A stretch of DNA of 52,422 bases from Octopus bimaculoides (GCF_001194135.2 NC_068995.1:15560803-15613224); one strand, 5' to 3'. Shown: positions 3,500 to 38,363, counted from the stretch's first letter. A program made the numbers and translations. Notes: generated from the sequence alone by a model not told the origin.

Positions 3500-4665
3500 T
3501 TTTCCATCGTTTCCAAAGATGGACGGAAGTGTACAATGACGATGGAAATAATGGCGGCAGTTGTGGTCATTGTGGTGGCAACTGCGGTACAGCAGCGACG
3601 TCGGTGAGGACCACAACGACTACGAGGACGAAAACGACGACGAAACATCAAGTGAAACATCAATCTCCATCGAACTTAATAGCTCAGGAAGTCTGAAAAA
3701 TCTGTGTGTATTACTTCTCTTAGCTTTTTTCTTTGATTAAATGATTTTAGAAAATGAATGTTTACTCTCTAGCTCAATATGACAACTAAATATCCCTCTT
3801 TAAACTCCGTATTGTCAATATAAGAGCTAAATATCTCTCATTAAAGTCTGTACCGTCTTTAGAATGGTGGGAACGTTTGTTTTATGTTCTAAATCTGAAA
3901 TTTGCTGCGTAAGAAAAAGATGTCATAATGTGGGTAAGAGCTATAGCTCCGGTGTTAATCGTATAGTTTTGTAGGAGGATGTATGTTTTAGCATCGTACT
4001 TCGAGAATATATATATATACTAAAGCTGTAACGAGGACAATAAAAATACTAAAATCGTAGCAAGAACAATAATACAAACCATAAGTAAAACACAAGAACC
4101 AAACAACAGCAACAACAATAAACATAACGAGAATGCCAGCTGCAGTTACAGCAACAATAGTTAACTGCAAATGCAATAACAATAACAATAACAATAATAA
4201 CAACAATTGCAAAAAGAAAAGAAACAGCAACCATGTTAGCAACAACAACGACTACGATAGCAACAATATCATCTGATATCAGAAATGGTTGTTGCAATAA
4301 AATCAACAACATTAACAACGTTAACAACAATTTTGGAAGTCACCGTGAAGGCAATGATGAGAACAGTTACAACAACAATCATAATGTAAATAGTGGCAAA
4401 AAAAAAAGCATCGACAATACCACCACCACCACCATTACTATCACTACCACCACCATCATCATCACCACCACCACCATCATCATCACCACTTGTAGCAATG
4501 ACGTCAACAATAGCAGCAACAACAATGACAGCAACCGTGAGGACAATGGCGACAAGAAAGACATCAACAATAACATCAGGAACTACCATCCTCACCGCTA
4601 CCACCATTCCCATCACCGGTACTAGCACCAGTACTAGCACCACCACCAACACCAGCACCACTACC

Positions 4666-4696
<31 letters not shown>

Positions 4697-5060
4697 CCAC
4701 CACTACCAGCACCACTACCACCAGCACCNNNNNNNNNNNNNNNNNNNNNNNNNNNNNNNNNNNNNNNNNNNNNNNNNNNNNNNNNNNNNNNNNNNNNNNN
4801 NNNNNNNNNNNNNNNNNNNNNNNNNNNNNNNNNNNNNNNNAGCACCACCACCAACACCAGCACCACTACCACCAGCACCACCACCACCAGCACCACCACC
4901 ACCAACAACAACAACAACAACGACAATAATAAAATCAGCAACCCTGATGACAATGACGAAAAGAACAACATCAGCACTACCATTATCATCATCATCATCG
5001 TCAACAACGGCAGCGTGACTGACAATAAGAACAACAAGACCAAAATAAAACAAGCAGAAT
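3500..5060. repeat. Compound trinucleotide low-complexity tract (CAA/AAT/CAT/CAC/CAG)
   Basis: Direct reading; contains gap 4729-4840 and generates spurious poly-T/H/V ORFs. Confidence 0.9.
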
Positions 5061-5654
5061 GACATGAGCCTAGAAGCAATTGTTAAAGAATTTCTTAGAA
5101 TGACATCTCTGGTTTGGAAATCATTGTTGCATATTTTCAAGATTTTCCAATTATTTCCTCATTGGTGGGGATCCGTGGTTAGAAAACTCAATTATCGTAT
5201 CCAAACTTGAGGCCCTTTATCCAAAATGTCCATCGTTTCATACAAATTTGCTCGTATCATATCTAACAAACAACCATCCCTTTATGTACTTCTCACACTA
5301 CGAAACCTTGCTGTTACAACGGTAGATAACGAATATAAACAATGATAGAGCTGCTTCTATAAATGTATATATTTTATACACATGGTGTTTATAAATCGTT
5401 TAAACATCATCTAATAAACATTTGTAATACGAAACTGACAAATTCTGTATAGGGAAGAAACGAATGGAGCACCGAGTAAAGTGTTTAAAAATTTTTTTTT
5501 TTTTAACTAAATAAAATTTGTTTTTGCTGCATTCAGTTACGGACTTCGGAGTTCGAATCCCACCTCAGCTGGCTTCGAGCAGATTTCTTTGTGGTATTTC
5601 TTTTGATTCTCTTCGTTCTAAGTTTAAATGCATCCGACGTCAGATATTGATTTT

Positions 5655-10748: not shown

Positions 10749-10828
<80 letters not shown>

Positions 10829-11497
10829 NNNNNNNNNNNNNNNNNNNNNNNNNNNNNNNNNNNNNNNNNNNNNNNNNNNNNNNNNNNNNNNNNNNNNNNN
10901 NNNNNNNNNNNNNNNNNNNNNNNNNNNNNNNNNNNNNNNNNNNNNNNNNNNNNNNNNNNNNNNNNNNNNNNNNNNNNNNNNNNNNNNNNNNNNNNNNNNN
11001 NNNNNNNNNNNNNNNNNNNNNNNNNNNNNNNNNNNNNNNNNNNNNNNNNNNNNNNNNNNNNNNNNNNNNNNNNNNNNNNNNNNNNNNNNNNNNNNNNNNN
11101 NNNNNNNNNNNNNNNNNNNNNNNNNNNNNNNNNNNNNNNTATATATATATATATATATATATCTATATATAATTTATAATGAATATTCAAAAGGAATATT
11201 TTATTGAACTCATATTAAGTGCTCTATTACTTTGAGCAAATATATATATATATATTTATATTATTAATAAAATTATCAGCAATATTCTCAGGAAATCAAT
11301 ATTCGAATTTTTGAAAGATGTATGGTTTATATGATGCAATAATTATTTTGAATTATAATTAAAATTAAAATATACAAAATATAAATGTATATAAAAAATA
11401 TATGCGTACATAAATGTATATAAAAATATATGCGTAAGTGAGTGTAAATGGTATACATAGGGAGTATGTATACAAATGGTATACATAGTGAGTGTAA

Positions 11498-11842
11498 ATG
11501 GTATACATAGGGAGTTCTATTAATTTTAAACAAAGATATCTAGTGCATATACATTCATTTAAACCAAATATAAATAGTAATACAACTTCATTAGCCACAT
11601 ACATACAGAAACTCAATAAAAATAAAATTAATTATAAATTGGACTGGCCAATAATAGATTCTGCAATACCATATACATATAAATCAAATAATTGCCGTTT
11701 ATGCACATTAGAATCACTGCATATATTACTATATAAATTTGACAATCCAATTAATACCAAGTCAGACGCGATATCATCACGTAAACATAGGTACTACAAA
11801 ACCTTTAAATATTATAATAGATCCCAAAACAAGGTAGAATAG
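11498..11842 (+). CDS. Penelope-type GIY-YIG endonuclease, N-terminally truncated ORF (114 aa)
   Basis: YIGSSINFKQRYLVHIHSF...TSLATYIQKL...YKLDWPII..AIPY...CRLCTLESLHIL...INTKSDAIS..KH follows the PLE endonuclease pattern YIG..FK.RY..H..SF / T.LS.YIW.LK / C.LC..EK..I / LN.RSE.IS.CRH. The first (GIY) motif is absent. Confidence 0.8.
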   Translation: MVYIGSSINFKQRYLVHIHSFKPNINSNTTSLATYIQKLNKNKINYKLDWPIIDSAIPYTYKSNNCRLCTLESLHILLYKFDNPINTKSDAISSRKHRYYKTFKYYNRSQNKVE

Positions 11843-12139
11843 AAAAAAAAAACACATGTGTGTATTTCTATAAGCATTTGTAGTGATATGTAAAAAAAAG
11901 TATGTATATATGTGTATATGTGATTGCATGTGTGTATATGTATAAATGTAGACACTTAATAATTGAACTCAAATACTAGTAATCTACAATACTTTCATAA
12001 TTATATTAAATTAAAATTGAAAATAAATATGTTAAATCTAAACACTTAAGGATTTGAACCTAGATTCTACTATATTACTTTTATAAGTAATAATAATATC
12101 CATATTAAATTAAACTTGAATTTGAAATAGAATCTTCTG

Positions 12140-12450
12140 ACAAATAATAAAAACTTCTATATATACTTATCTCAATTCTAACCAAATTTTTATAATGAAA
12201 AGTATGCAGTGGATGGAACATTTAAATATTGGGTGTGATTCATAGGATTTACCAATTATATATTTAATTATTGCGAAATAACGCAATAAATCTAACAACA
12301 AGATGGACTCTACTATAATAATGTGCTGTGATTCTCAAATATTCTGAAAAATATACCGACATCAAAAACTATATATCATATAAAATATCTACAAAGGAAA
12401 AATATAAATTCTCTAAATTATATGATGGATTGGATTTACAAATTCTCAAA
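12140..12450 (+). pseudogene. Decayed Mutator (MULE) transposase catalytic core
   Basis: YAVDGTFKYW with D at 12212, IYQLYI in a shifted frame, and YMMDW with D at 12428, in frame 72 codons later. Multiple stops. Confidence 0.6.
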
Positions 12451-13069
12451 GGACAGTATGTATTTTTAATATTTTTAATATTTTTAATATTCTTAATATT
12501 CTTTAATATTTTAATTAACATCATCCTATAGCATATTCTATTATGTATACCATTCGTTTTCACATATATGATAATAACTTTATACATCTCTAAAGAGCGG
12601 AATTATTGCCAATATGCTTGTCTATATTAGATTACATTATAAAGGCAATAATATCCGTGAAACGATCGTAAGATGCATTTTAGACTTTCATAATATTTTA
12701 ATTGAATTATATTTACACTCACTTACGCATATATTTTTATATAGATTTATGTACGCATATATTTTTTATATACAATTATATTTTGTATATTTCAATTATA
12801 ATTCAAAATGATTATTGTGTCATATAAAACATACATCTTTCAGAAATTCGAATATTGATTTCCTGAGAATATTGTTAATAATTTTATTAATATATATATA
12901 TATATATGAGTATATGTGAGTATATAAATACACAGACATATATATCAATGGGCTGTATGCATGCGCATATATAACTATACGCAAATGTATATTATATATA
13001 CATGTTAGTGTGCGTGTCTGTGTGTGACTGTGTATGTGCGGGCGTATCTGTGCGTGTTTGTGTATATGT

Positions 13070-13714
13070 CGGCTAAAACAGTCTCCAGTTCTTGTAGTGA
13101 TGATGTTGGAGGATATCGTCTCCTTACTTGTTTTTCTAAAATGCACCATAAATGTTCAATAATATTGAGATCCGGGGTCTGTGGTGGCCAGATAAGATGT
13201 TCAACGTCACTAGAATGTTCCTTGTGACATTCAGTAATAACTTAAGCTGTGTGAATTGGTGCATTATCATCCTGAAAGATTGCGTTTCCCTCTGGAAACA
13301 ATTCCGCAACCATAGAATGAATTTGATCAGATAAAATGCTCAAGTAGTCATGACTATTGATTCTGCCATGAAGGGAAACCATTGGGCCGGCGGATTTCCA
13401 AGATATAGCCTACGCACCATAGATCATCATAGATGCTCTTGCATGTTCAACAGTTGGGAAAGGCCGTCTGGGTGGTCGGAAATAAGGTAAAGGATGACTC
13501 GTCATAGAAAATAACATTCTTCCACTGTTCTAGGGACCAATTCTGTAGGTTTTCACTCCACTCTAAATGCTTTGCAACGTTTGTGTTTGAAAGTAGTGGT
13601 TTTCTGATTGTAGCCCTCCCATGAAATCCGGCTTTGTGCACCTCCGACGAACAGTTTTTGTGGGAACTGGGTTCTCGAGGTGGTTATTAAGCTCTGCAGT
13701 AATTTTGGGAGCTG
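13070..13714 (-). mobile_element. Decayed Tc1-like transposase, DD36E spacing
   Basis: KAGFHGRATIRKPLL, WKNVIFYDESSF, FQDDNAPIHTA*, WPPQTPDLNIIEHLW. There are 36 codons between the second D and the E. Internal deletion; 5' part lost in the gap. Confidence 0.88.
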
Positions 13715-15189
13715 NNNNNNNNNNNNNNNNNNNNNNNNNNNNNNNNNNNNNNNNNNNNNNNNNNNNNNNNNNNNNNNNNNNNNNNNNNNNNNNNNNNNNN
13801 NNNNNNNNNNNNNNTATGCATATATATATATATGCATATATATTTATATGTATATATTTATATGCATATATATATTTATATGCATATATATATGAATATA
13901 TATATGCATATATTTATATATGCATATATACATTTAGATCTTAACAATCTTCCGGTTCAGAGAACAAGGTGTCATCATTCCACTTTTCTCTTCCTTTTTA
14001 CGGCCACATGACCTAGTTTCGTGAACGCGCAGGACTCGTTAACCCCATCAGATGCTAGGAGCATCTAATAATATGAACGTCCATATTATATATATTGAAT
14101 ACGGCTAAAGGGCTACAAACGAGTCTGGGAATCCGATAGCGGACAGAACTAGACAGACTTACAGACCAATACGTACGTCTCCACGGTAACTGCAGTGAAT
14201 TCGCCTTTAAAAGCTGAAATATGTTACAAACATATTTTAATTACCTGAAGTGATAAAGAGAGAGAGGGAGAGAGAGAGTTACGTTTTTGCGGTATTTTAA
14301 GAAATTAATGAAAAAAATCCTCTAAGCTTTACAAGCATAAATTTTAAAAAGAAAACAAACAAAAGCATCTAACAGCAAATGCTGAAGTGAAAAATCAAAT
14401 AAAATACATGAGAAAATATGTACATAAATTTTATTAAAACAGACATAAGGTAATACGTCTTGGATGCGAATAATCCGAAACGGAGACGAGTTTTACCGCT
14501 TCCTTGTCGCATGCTCGAACAATTGTGAAGATCTCCTCTACGAAACCATTGGTTGCCTTGTTAACCCACAAATAAATTATGTGTATGTACAAATTTTGTT
14601 GTGTCTAGAGAGTTATGACAATATTATTAACACTGGCACTGATTCAGTTCAACTTCTTTATTATTAGTCAATTGGTTAAATACACACAACTAACAAATTA
14701 GCTGTTCGTTTCACTTGGTTAAGCAAAAGCTCTTTCGTTGCTATTTGCAACATTTTCAATGAGTTTTCACTTAGTCTCTTATGGAGACAGCGTTTGTCTG
14801 TTTGAGACGTTGTTGTGTGCTTGCGTATGTATGTATGTGTATGTGTATATATGTATGTATTCTCATACGTCTGTGTGTGTGTGTGCTTATGGTGTTTGTG
14901 TATGTGTGTAGGTGTCTGTGTATGTGATCATGTAGGTATGCAATATTTCATCCTGTAAAGAACAAATGTAACATTATAATCAGTTTTGTTACAGAAAATA
15001 ACACATTCTCCGAAATGTGAAACGATAATTTATTTAATTTGAAGCAAGTAAATAAAAACCAATACAATTTTATTAATTGTCAGAAATCGATACCATAATA
15101 TATGTAATCAAAATTTGTTGGTCGCTTTTCATTAAGAAGCAAAAGTATTAAATAGAGATCTTTTATTGTCTATATACAAAACTTAATAC

Positions 15190-17430: not shown

Positions 17431-18397
<967 letters not shown>

Positions 18398-26794: not shown

Positions 26795-27469
26795 CCTGAC
26801 AGGTGACATTTTAATTTTAACTCCTGTTTTTATGCAATTACTGTGTGGATAAGTTATTTCTTCTGTTTCAATGTTAAAAGTAAAAATAGAGGAAAACGTG
26901 ATACATTTTTGTCATTTGATGCACTTTGTTTCCGAAAGAAACAAAGCACTATACAAGAAGCAAAAAAGATGTACAGTTTATAGTGCTACCTTACTATAAT
27001 CTATGTGGGTATAATACTATAACGTGCTATAATCAATATTGCCTTATTACTGTCTATAGTACCAAACTATTCTATATTTTTAGTGTAGTTCTGCCAATTT
27101 ACTATAACCAACAGTGCCACCTTACGGTAAATTAGTACAGTCTATGATTGCGTAATATTATAACACACTTAATCAATAATGCCATACCGCTATAATCTAG
27201 AGTTAGAGTATCGAAACTATTTTACCCTATAGTGTTAGAATTCACAATTATTAATAGTTTTATACAATAAATTTCACTGTCTGAAACAAGTTATGGAAAT
27301 TCTAAAGCATCAAAGTACTTTTTGTAATGAAAGTTTTATTTTAGTGGTTGAGGTTATTTCAGTACCAGGATGACCAAGAAAATCTGGAACCATAAAAGAT
27401 ATTCACGGAACTGAAAAAACATGTCAAAAATTTAACGCACTATTTATAGAAAGTGTAAAAAGGACGTAC

Positions 27470-27829
27470 CGATTATTCCTGACGCTTCTTTTGAAAATCC
27501 TTTGCCAGAAATCACGAAGAAATCCAAATAACCTTCATTTGGTGCCATCTTAGATTCCAAATTTCTTCTTATTAGCAGTTTTTGGCCTTTAGAAATTCCA
27601 AATTCCATATATTTGCCTCTGCCATTTATGCCCAACGTCGAGCTGGATGATGTCACACCTGTTTCGTTATCCCATGTAAATATATGGTTGTTAAAGGCTA
27701 TTTTGTGCGGCGTGACAATTACAGTCATGTGAGGAGACGTAATATATAGTTGGCCAATATATGTTCTGAGAGGTCTGTCTGGTTTAAAACGGCCTTTGCC
27801 TTCGACTATTTTGGCCGTAATGTTAATTC
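27470..27829 (-). CDS. ITIH: ITIH-like gene, internal exon (360 nt, phase 1-1), ITI-HC C-terminal domain
   Basis: Acceptor ttttgtag| and donor |GTACGT. Encodes INITAKIV...RTYIGQLYI...FTWDN...GYLDFFVISGKGFSKEASGII(G), matching ITIH TVNG..TYFG..F.W..LGFYV.....S...HGLLGQ. Confidence 0.9.
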
Positions 27830-28329
27830 CTACAAAACGCAAAAATAGAAATCTATTTGCAAATGATAACTAAGATTTTTTATTAAAAAATCAGATAAGC
27901 AACAGAAAAAAGACTTTTTCTCTGAAAAAATCTTAAACTGCGGCCGTGCTGGGGCATCACCTTTGTATGTACTGGATTTAAAATATAACACATATGAAAT
28001 AGTATTGAAATCAATAATAAATGAGAAACTTAGATGACAGAAACTGTTGTGACATCACACTTAAATTATTGTATTATTCTGGTATGATGAGAAAGAAAAA
28101 TAGTGTTTCAGTACAGTGATAAATAATAATAGTAAGCCAAACGAACCATCAAAAGAAAAAAATTACTCAGGATAACTCAATTTGGTAGAAAGAGAAGTCA
28201 AATAACCCTCAATTCACAGCCGGCTGTCTTAAAAAAGCTACAACTAAAGATCGATCATATAATGTAGTGTTAGATATGCAGTTTAGCTGCTTCTAATTTA
28301 GGTAAAATGTCAGCAGTTTTAAAGGTGAA

Positions 28330-28445: not shown

Positions 28446-28894
28446 TAAATAGTATATGAATTGAAAGATCAGATTTTTTATTGTATAGTATGGGACATAC
28501 CCTATCCGCGTCTATTTCTTTTCTCTCTCTCTTCCTCTCTCTTGATATATACTGTTTTATTAAGGTTGCAAAAACATCACAAAAACTACTAATCAGTTTC
28601 ACGTTCTCGCTCGTCGGGCAGTTGCGATCAGGAATAGAATAGAATTTTATCCCATTCTTGATCACAGCTGCCCGACGAGCGGGAACGTGAAACACTGAGT
28701 AGCATTCTTTAGTGATGGTTTTGAAGCTTTAATAAAAAAGCGTATCACTCTACCTTCGGTATTCGAGCACTTTCTTCCACTTAGTTTTGCATTTATGTGC
28801 TCACACGTGTGTGTGTGTGTGTAAATAATTAAGATTCAGTTGAAGCACAAGTCAGTCCGGTATTATCCGCACAGTTCAAAGTAAAGTAAATAAG

Positions 28895-29241
28895 ATCAAA
28901 ATAAGCAATAGGGTATCAAGTAGTAATGCAGTACGGCCGTTTCGAACGGCTCCATTTAACTGAACAATGCAATCATTTCCTCAATTTAAATACAGTGCTA
29001 TCTCCATCCGCACCAAAAAATTCTATTTATGTATATGGGATTTCAACAGGCAGGATATATTAATATAATTTGTCTTCAATATCTAACAGTAAGAAGGTGG
29101 AAGAAAATTCATGTTGTCGCTATTGTAGCTGAAGATAACACTGTATTTATATTGATGAAATGATTTCATTGCTCAGTTAAATGGAGCCGCTTAAAACGGT
29201 CGTATTGCATTACTACTTGATATCCTGTTGCTTATTTTGAT
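28895..29241. mobile_element. MITE with 109-bp terminal inverted repeats
   Basis: 28895-29003 is the reverse complement of 29133-29241 with scattered mismatches. No ORF inside. Right end abuts (TA)n and a gap. Confidence 0.75.
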
Positions 29242-35494: not shown

Positions 35495-35632
<138 letters not shown>

Positions 35633-37300: not shown

Positions 37301-37494
37301 CTCCACACACACACTAATTTTCTGGCACTCCTGGTTTAAACTCGTGCCGGATTAACACCTTTGCTGGATTAATAGAGATGAATTCCTTGCAGACCACCAC
37401 TACGTTAGGAATAACTATTTAGCTACCTTCATGACAAACGCTTTGCATCCATTAGAAATATGTTATACAGGTAGAAGAAATAGGTAAATTCAAA

Positions 37495-37975
37495 TGTGTA
37501 CTTATTTTATCAGCCTCGAAAGGATAAAAGGCAAAATCGACCTCGGTGGGATTTGATCTCAGAATGTAAAGACGTACGAAATGCTGGGAAGCATTTTACC
37601 CGGTGAAGCATTTTACTCGCGTCCTTGATAATTATAATAATTATAATAATAGCTTGAAATTTTGCCACAAGGGCAGCAATTTTTGTGGAGAGGGGATGAG
37701 TCGATTACATGACCCCACTGTTTAACTGGTACTTATTTTTTTTATGAACGGCGAAAAAGTGAAACGCAAATCGACTTCGGCAGAATTAGAACTCAGGACG
37801 TAGCTATTTTGGGAGAAGGGACTAGTCGATTACATCGACACCAGTGTTTCACTGGTACTAAATTTATGAAATGCAAAGTCGACCTCGGCGGAATTTGAAC
37901 TCAGAACACGAAGACAGACAAAATACCGCTAAACATTTCACATTTCGACCAGCGTGCTAACGATTCTGCCAGCTT
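37495..37975 (-). mobile_element. Cluster of three SINE family B copies
   Basis: The aaaggcaaa(a/g)tcgacctcgg...tttga(a/t)ctcag motif occurs three times, at ~37525, ~37765 and ~37875. Confidence 0.8.
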
Positions 37976-38363
37976 ACTACTACTACTACTAATAATAATT
38001 CCTATGTTCTATCAGGGCATCGTTTCAAGGTGACTTGAGAATAAGGAACTCAAAGCGGTTGGTCTTAGACTTATATGCAGTATGTTTTATTAAAAATAAC
38101 GTGTCCGATAATGTATATTTTGTTTCCTCCGAAGCCACAGGCTGGACTCTGCGTCACTAAAGGGTTTTCGGATGAAGTAGAATTGACATTTTACAATATC
38201 TTTCCCCCCACTGCAAACATACCCACACTCACGCATGAGAGTTCGTGTGCATGTGTGTCCGTGTGTTCGGAATCTATGTAAAATTCCGTTTGAATTTCAG
38301 TGTCGATGGATCAATCTTTATGCTGCATTCTCTTCCATTATTCTGTGTATGTATATGTGTGTG

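Follow-up and report, generated by a model that had tools for sequence, protein, structure and literature searches.

A 1631-nt unit bounded by two long inverted arms lies within the window, as we call the whole 52,422-nt stretch of Octopus bimaculoides DNA that was analysed (Table 1). The arms align by blastn at 91.5% identity, with 10 substitutions in 182 columns (K2P 0.057) plus one 6-nt indel, and an inverted-repeat search shows them as two collinear pairs, divided by a single indel. The same coordinates had been given in the initial annotation for inverted repeats of ~185 bp. Left and right arm share the outer terminus TATTAATAAAATTAT..., and a 39-nt arm probe matches the two arms only in the whole 52-kb window (chance expectation, 0). 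A blastn search for further copies in the window also returned just the two arms, the remaining matches being low-complexity TG/TA sequence. Both outer ends adjoin (TA)n tracts (11240–11255 on the left and 12890–12907 on the right), as initially described, and tracts with at least six TA units make up just 2.1% of the window. Extra (TA)n is present at 10802–10828 and 11140–11162, with an assembly gap between the two tracts. A target-site duplication of 8–11 bp is not readable at the ends of the unit, as the flanks on both sides consist of (TA)n. The interior had been described as richer in AT than its surroundings, and indeed the unit has a GC content of 22.5% (18% in the arms and 24% in the interior), whereas each flank, like the window as a whole, has 36%. 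Arms, open reading frame (ORF) and interior are alike in composition (18–27% GC).

Table 1. Features of the 1631-nt unit (window coordinates) and layout of the seven loci (L002–L008) that code for full-length relatives (coordinates of each locus).
Sequence	Feature	Coordinates	Strand	Description
Window	Left flank	11240–11261	.	(TA)n-like tract ATATATATATATATATTTATAT; presumed target microsatellite
Window	Left arm, 188 nt	11262–11449	-	Putative second copy, inverted and extremely 5'-truncated, limited to the final ~188 nt at the 3' end of the element
Window	Head-to-head junction	11437–11515	+	Triplicated motif, 12-nt repeat and small palindrome
Window	ORF, 114 codons	11498–11842	+	C-terminal part of a predicted Hydra-type PLE GIY-YIG endonuclease, beginning at the YIG strand and ending at the natural stop
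Window	AT-rich non-coding interior, 868 nt	11843–12710	+	Interpreted as the main copy's proximal 3' untranslated region
Window	Right arm, 182 nt	12711–12892	+	Putative 3' terminus of the main (+) copy
Window	Right flank	12890–12907	.	(TA)n; presumed second half of the target microsatellite
L002	Arms, 97.6% identity	2835–3000 / 5163–5330		Complete ORF between the arms; each side flanked by (TA)n
L003	Arms, 99.5% identity	2772–2987 / 4932–5146		Arms include the ORF end
L004	Tandem copies			2.5 tandem copies inside (TA)n
L005	Arms, 897 nt, 99.2% identity	35602–36497 / 37406–38302		Solemya velum (bivalve)
L006	Single copy			
L007	Arms, 2147 nt, 99.95% identity			Two nearly complete copies, head-to-head
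L008	Arms, 574 nt	2016–2589 / 4440–5013		(TA)n on both sides

The left arm and the ORF meet at a short junction built of repeats. A motif, AAATGGTATACATAG(G/T)GAGT, occurs there three times (starts at 11447, 11475 and 11497), and its repeats make up the 48 nt between the end of the left arm and the start of the endonuclease homology. The 12 nt that close the left arm, GTGAGTGTAAAT, reappear directly upstream of the ORF's ATG, and the junction also holds a small palindrome (TATGTATAC-AAATG-GTATACATA). Three in-frame stop codons fall within 12 nt upstream of the same ATG.

The ORF belongs to a large protein family. An exhaustive phmmer search retrieved homologues in 1199 cluster representatives at E<=1e-3 and in 33 at E<=1e-10 (best, 2.8e-15), and tblastn gave an E value of 3e-21. 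Most phmmer matches were short ORFs; the long ones were proteins of 672–806 aa, whose homologous part is the C-terminal ~110 residues. A full-length family profile built from 22 members has a single match site in the 52 kb, where profile positions 605–714 align with 11498–11824 (E 1.5e-24). This profile search found no reverse transcriptase (RT) or other part of the ~710-aa protein elsewhere in the 52-kb window. The lack of an RT anywhere in the window indicates that the copy is 5'-truncated. Only the exhaustive phmmer search recovered the family: a word-indexed protein search with the ORF returned no relatives, an exact-protein look-up had no recorded entry for it, and a Pfam scan gave no match at E<=10, PF01541 included. 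A structure model of the ORF (pLDDT 83.8) had no PDB match at E<=10 in a fold search, and profile searches of the PDB by sequence retrieved nothing meaningful.

The ORF starts at VYIG and ends at the natural C-terminus of the family. It lacks the GIY strand ((V/I)VY.A.V in the relatives), the CxCX5C linker and all of the RT; every full-length relative has both the strand and this Cys-rich linker ahead of the region. The missing GIY strand and the upstream stop codons identify the ORF as a partial GIY-YIG domain and, together with the missing linker and RT, as the 3' end of a Penelope-like element (PLE) ORF rather than a self-contained nuclease gene. The initial annotation described an uninterrupted GIY-YIG ORF of 114 codons; the open frame and its homology to a large family stand, but the domain is incomplete. 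Within the part that is present, the ORF keeps the conserved residues Y3, G5, K11, R13, H17, C66, C69, E72, N86 and H97, three of which (R13, E72 and N86) fall in alignment columns that vary little or not at all within the family. The pair C66-x-x-C69 precedes E72, N86 is present and CCHH is absent. A nearly invariant cysteine of the family, at position 95, is an arginine in the window ORF, so the CxH motif is reduced to H97 in this copy.

We also considered whether selection keeps the ORF open. In neutral simulations, the frame remains open in 49–69% of runs after 3–6% random substitution, so its open state needs no selection and we rejected this explanation as unnecessary.

The full-length relatives of the ORF are single ORFs of ~700 aa that fill contigs of 2.3–3 kb. 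The consensus of their RT part includes RWK, ADKT, LKDHK, RLINPAKS, FD..FYPSI, FDVTMGS.DGAE, GLYRDDGL, FLDVTLNL..G.Y.PYRKPND and SNHPP. The linker reads CNCR.K..CPL.G.C (CNCRx4CPLxGxC, of the CxCX5C type) and is followed by ....VVY.A.V. The endonuclease consensus runs K.YIGLTE..FK.RY..H..SF......NSTELSKYIW.LK.......W.I....Y.... in its first half and KRC.LC..EK..I......LNKRSEL.SKCRH in its second half (CxLCxxE, N..CRH), with CCHH absent. Among PDB structures, an AlphaFold model of one relative (P0189; pLDDT 90.7, pTM 0.86) matched the telomerase TERT 3du5 best (E 5.9e-8); RTs of DRTs, retrons, group II introns and LINE-1 came next. Such a result is expected for the RTs of PLEs. The C-terminal domain of the P0189 model has the order strand-strand-helix-helix-strand-helix, and the Foldseek listing is occupied by the RT domain. 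Of 38 close relatives, 10 match PF01541 at E<=0.1 (best, 3.3e-5); one of the family's proteins, P0010, matches it at E 0.012, below the curated cut-off, and the Solemya protein has a faint precomputed match to it. Among 8000 candidates scored, 960 are Hydra-type RT-endonuclease proteins at E<=1e-5.

These motifs are those of the Hydra clade of PLEs (Craig, Yushenova, Rodriguez and Arkhipova, 2021, Mol Biol Evol 38:5005; PMC8557442). Elements of this clade are shorter than 3 kb and have RWK in place of GxKF/Y, DKT in place of DKG and a CxCX5C linker, and their endonuclease lacks CCHH and carries CxxC before a conserved glutamate and CxH after a conserved asparagine (PMC8557442). Their hosts include Mollusca, and canonical hammerhead ribozymes have been reported for the clade (PMC8557442). 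The full-length relatives of the ORF show RWK, DKT, CxCX5C and a length below 3 kb. The endonuclease remnant in the window shares with the clade YIG..FK.RY..H..SF, the CxxC before the glutamate, the asparagine followed by x-H and the lack of CCHH. Judged by its sequence, the ORF is the remnant of a predicted Penelope-type GIY-YIG endonuclease. The attribution of this GIY-YIG variant to Penelope-type elements had been made initially, and we can refine it: FK.RY..H..SF and C.LC..E are the signature of the Hydra clade. The motifs, read with the published description, would place the window family in the Hydra clade (PMC8557442). The Hydra-clade PLE itself is already described and the window family is a new, diverged member. 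The window copy differs from the clade in having no RT, linker or GIY strand, in the arginine that replaces the CxH cysteine and in its lack of a detectable hammerhead. Furthermore, its 3' region is ~1 kb long versus 0.14–0.27 kb, and the nearest protein to the ORF (phmmer) is only 44% identical.

Canonical Penelope, Poseidon and Neptune elements are similar in that the RT and GIY-YIG domains, the second of them C-terminal, form a single ORF, in target-primed reverse transcription, in direct or inverted pseudo-LTRs and in frequent 5' truncation. However, these canonical clades have CCHH inside the endonuclease core and DKG, whereas the family found here has no CCHH and has DKT.

To interpret the arms, we compared how the elements are laid out at seven independent genomic loci, each coding for a full-length relative (L002–L008; Table 1). 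Five of the seven (L002, L003, L005, L007 and L008) have a head-to-head inverted layout, and the "terminal inverted repeats" of the relatives are the element's own 3' end, with lengths of 168–2147 nt. For example, the Solemya locus holds a 5'-truncated copy head-to-head with a more truncated inverted copy, between (TA)n tracts at 35505–35538 and 38299–38336. Tracts of (TA)n occupy both outer ends in four of the five head-to-head loci and occur near the element in six of all seven. This is consistent with published descriptions of PLE insertions as highly 5'-truncated and often partially tandem, with a frequent adjacent inverted, 5'-truncated copy that gives rise to inverted repeats (PMC8557442). 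The window unit shares with the Hydra clade the insertion into (TA)n, the 5' truncation and the inverted truncated copy that yields inverted repeats. The ~5.5% divergence of its arms, compared to identities of 97.6–99.95% between the arms of the relatives, suggests that the window copy is comparatively old.

We therefore estimate, at a probability of about 0.85, that the 1631-nt unit is a dead Hydra-clade PLE insertion in (TA)n, composed of two 5'-truncated copies placed head-to-head. The main (+) copy, ~1.4 kb long (roughly 11498–12892), would comprise the last 114 codons of the RT-endonuclease ORF and a long 3' untranslated region; the second, inverted copy (11262–11449) would carry the last 188 nt of the 3' region alone. 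With this arrangement, the two 3' termini face outward into (TA)n and therefore mimic terminal inverted repeats. The initial annotation had named, as one half of a result contrary to its own reading, inverted repeats that are part of a Penelope element; the layout of the relatives and the position of the junction indicate indirectly that they are.

Published PLE behaviour suggests how such a unit might arise. The GIY-YIG endonuclease of an active Hydra-type element would nick a (TA)n tract, and target-primed reverse transcription would then start from the 3' end of the element RNA at nicks on both strands. Both cDNAs would stop early, one after ~1.4 kb and the other after 188 nt, and a short homology (GTGAGTGTAAAT / GGTATAC...) could then connect them, slippage leaving the triplicated motif of 22–28 nt. 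The ~5.5% divergence and the indel between the arms would have accumulated after insertion. Both the target-primed mechanism and the formation of the joint are proposed here by analogy. The twin priming of L1 elements is similar in its two priming events per target, its inverted-plus-direct structure and the microhomology at the internal joint. In L1, however, the piece that is inverted derives from within the RNA and a single 3' end is present, whereas both pieces of the window unit would carry the 3' terminus of the element and for this reason form inverted repeats at its ends. The window copy cannot move or act alone, since it lacks an RT and a hammerhead and its endonuclease is incomplete.

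The 868-nt interior is less easily fitted to this reading. Searches for proteins, Rfam families, hammerheads and internal repeats gave no match in it, and the distance from the stop codon to the 3' end is 1050 nt in the window; among the relatives it is 136–267 nt in five and 711 nt in L006. The interior contains a TG/TA-rich stretch (11856–11955) and a 9-nt tandem repeat (12458–12520), which may have lengthened it. In the relatives, a hammerhead core lies 60–110 nt upstream of the 3' end, as in both arms of L002 (CTGACGAG-GCGCTTAGGCGC-GAAAC). Neither Rfam (E<=10) nor a regular-expression search for the core found a hammerhead in the window unit. Rfam also missed the real ribozymes of the relatives, so we count as a test only a custom covariance model (R1), built from the ribozymes of four relatives. 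R1 scores 45–65 bits in L002, L003, L004, L007 and L008, including L003 copies outside the training set, and finds no hammerhead across 11140–13000 with filters off. Nor does the arm show convincing homology to the 3' ends of the relatives beyond short strings such as CATCTTT and ATTCGA. Position, composition and the analogy with the relatives suggest that both the arms and the 868-nt interior represent the window family's own 3' region.

The same results could also be explained by chance nesting, in which a PLE fragment landed inside an unrelated, unclassified, non-autonomous element of ~1.3 kb with terminal inverted repeats, itself AT-rich and located in (TA)n. Arms and interior without PLE homology or a hammerhead, and an interior far longer than the usual Hydra-type 3' region, would fit such a nest. 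Yet a fragment would land within ~50 nt of the inner edge of an arm only ~8% of the time by position alone, and Hydra-type elements target (TA)n, of which there is none at the fragment's own borders. Furthermore, the ORF reaches its natural stop and continues into DNA of equal composition, and the 12 nt at the end of the arm are repeated at the ORF start, as the joint of a single event would give. The identical architecture is also the norm among the relatives. We consider this explanation unlikely.

An equally improbable extension of the head-to-head PLE reading is that the unit belongs to a non-autonomous family that arose from a Hydra-type PLE and propagates through mobilisation in trans by autonomous relatives. 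Reported precedents from other PLE lineages are retrozymes and those nonautonomous Chlamys elements whose 3' ends are shared with autonomous families (PMC8557442; bioRxiv 10.64898/2026.07.22.740005). If such a family existed, each copy would combine an endonuclease-tail ORF, a non-coding body of ~1 kb and a shared 3' end, and copies would form regular head-to-head pairs that mimic transposons with terminal inverted repeats.

The initial annotation had interpreted the unit as a Mutator-like DNA transposon (MULE) with long terminal inverted repeats and a decayed DDE core (DGTFKY...MMDW), which captured or stably carries the Penelope-type GIY-YIG endonuclease. Long inverted arms are present and one frame (+0) does contain the short strings DGTFKY and MMDW, but several stop codons separate them. 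When 12100–12700 was read through, hmmscan against Pfam-A found no family, PF10551 or other, at E<=10, and all six frames of 11201–12950, with stops converted to X, gave zero Pfam families at the same threshold. No MULE model matched the segment 12140–12450, which is the other half of the result that the annotation itself had named as contrary to its reading. By the identical read-through method, a decayed Tc1-like transposase remnant to the right of the unit (~13080–13714, minus strand) matches DDE_3 at E 2.4e-11, which demonstrates that the method is able to find decayed DDE frames in this window. With Pfam silent and this control detected, we take the "DDE core" (about 12200–12440) as a chance resemblance. 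The arms are not specific to MULEs because head-to-head PLE insertions look alike, and pure PLE copies elsewhere reproduce the layout of arms plus (TA)n. The likeness to MULEs and Pack-MULEs is therefore outward only (long inverted ends of ~185 nt and an AT-rich body): the unit has no DDE remnant in any frame and no readable 8–11-bp duplication, and its arms are explained by the retroelement itself. With no DDE signal and arms that match the usual PLE insertion product, we abandoned capture of a retroelement endonuclease by a MULE as very improbable. Just as hard to credit is a misassembly that created the inverted arms beside the gap at 10829–11139, even with this 311-N gap 120 nt to the left of the unit and inside (TA)n, and with PLE arrays known to disturb short-read assemblies (PMC8557442), since the 10 substitutions and 6-nt indel between the arms are unlike a duplicated read pile and both arms lie in uninterrupted sequence.

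The head-to-head PLE reading mainly corrects the annotation of the locus. An AT-rich body between long inverted ends, with a nuclease ORF inside, is easily labelled a DNA transposon that has captured a gene; under this reading, the combination is what a PLE inserting into TA microsatellites normally leaves behind. Remnants of this type can mislead both annotators and transposon finders based on terminal inverted repeats. Hydra-type RT-endonuclease proteins are abundant across public assemblies, and the unit would add a small data point, namely that a Hydra-type PLE was formerly active in this genome. Beyond its correct annotation, the unit is of low interest, as an ordinary retroelement remnant. 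A second, tiny head-to-head remnant is located in the window at 28.5 kb.

In five of the seven genomic loci compared, Hydra-type relatives of the truncated Penelope-like retroelement (PLE) carry hammerhead-type ribozyme cores in their arms and 3′ regions. These cores are detected at 45–65 bits by a small custom covariance model (R1) built from four of them; at E ≤ 0.1, Rfam reported none of them in the three loci scanned (L002, L003 and L004). The same custom model matches both arms of a palindrome in the window, with scores of 18.6 bits (E 0.005) and 17.5 bits (E 0.011). Each arm carries a degenerate hammerhead-like core (CCGACGAG...GTGAAAC) and ends in the motif TTTAATAAAA(A/C)AG. Because this layout is similar to that of Hydra-type PLE 3′ ends, the palindrome appears to represent another head-to-head PLE remnant, a very short one. 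The paired copies in locus L007, which has no (TA)8 tract, are an extreme case of the inverted arrangement.

Features of the window and of the related loci
Feature	Location	Strand	Basis or description
Assembly gap, 311 N	window 10829–11139		120 nt from the left end of the PLE, within (TA)n tract
Decayed Tc1/mariner-type transposase	window ~13080–13714	minus	Pfam DDE_3 match of read-through
151-codon ORF	window 17855–18310	plus	likeness judged by eye
132-codon ORF	window 27444–27842	minus	Pfam ITI_HC_C (inter-alpha-trypsin inhibitor heavy chain C-terminus), E 1.7e-12
Palindrome, ~200 nt, two arms	window 28547–28745		hammerhead-like core and shared end motif per arm
Long hairpin-forming inverted repeat, arms roughly 110 nt	window 28925–29211		weak miRNA-precursor matches
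Hammerhead-type ribozyme cores	L002 2869–2918 and 5247–5296; also L003, L004, L007, L008		R1
Two nearly full-length Hydra-type copies, head-to-head	L007 699–5140		99.95% identity over 2147 nt
loxP-like ATAACTTCGTATAATGTATG	L001 2581–2607		at end of Logan contig encoding P0010, a full-length relative

Short-read assemblies are known to break at tandem and inverted PLE arrays, and the gap on the left flank may therefore hide part of the insertion. The right side of the PLE adjoins the Tc1/mariner-type remnant, which is cut by an N gap (13715–13814). The read-through translation matches DDE_3 with an E value of 2.4e-11. This is a genuine DDE remnant, yet it lies outside the arms of the PLE and is unrelated to them.

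The ORF matching ITI_HC_C is probably a host-gene exon; a word-indexed protein search found no homologues of it. By eye, the 151-codon ORF is similar to the C-terminal portion of a mariner-like transposase; it had no Pfam match at E ≤ 0.01. The long inverted repeat, which was detected solely as weak hits against miRNA-precursor models from plants and animals, may be a MITE-like element. Among the sequences outside the window, the loxP-like stretch in L001 is probably a cloning-vector remnant in that public run.
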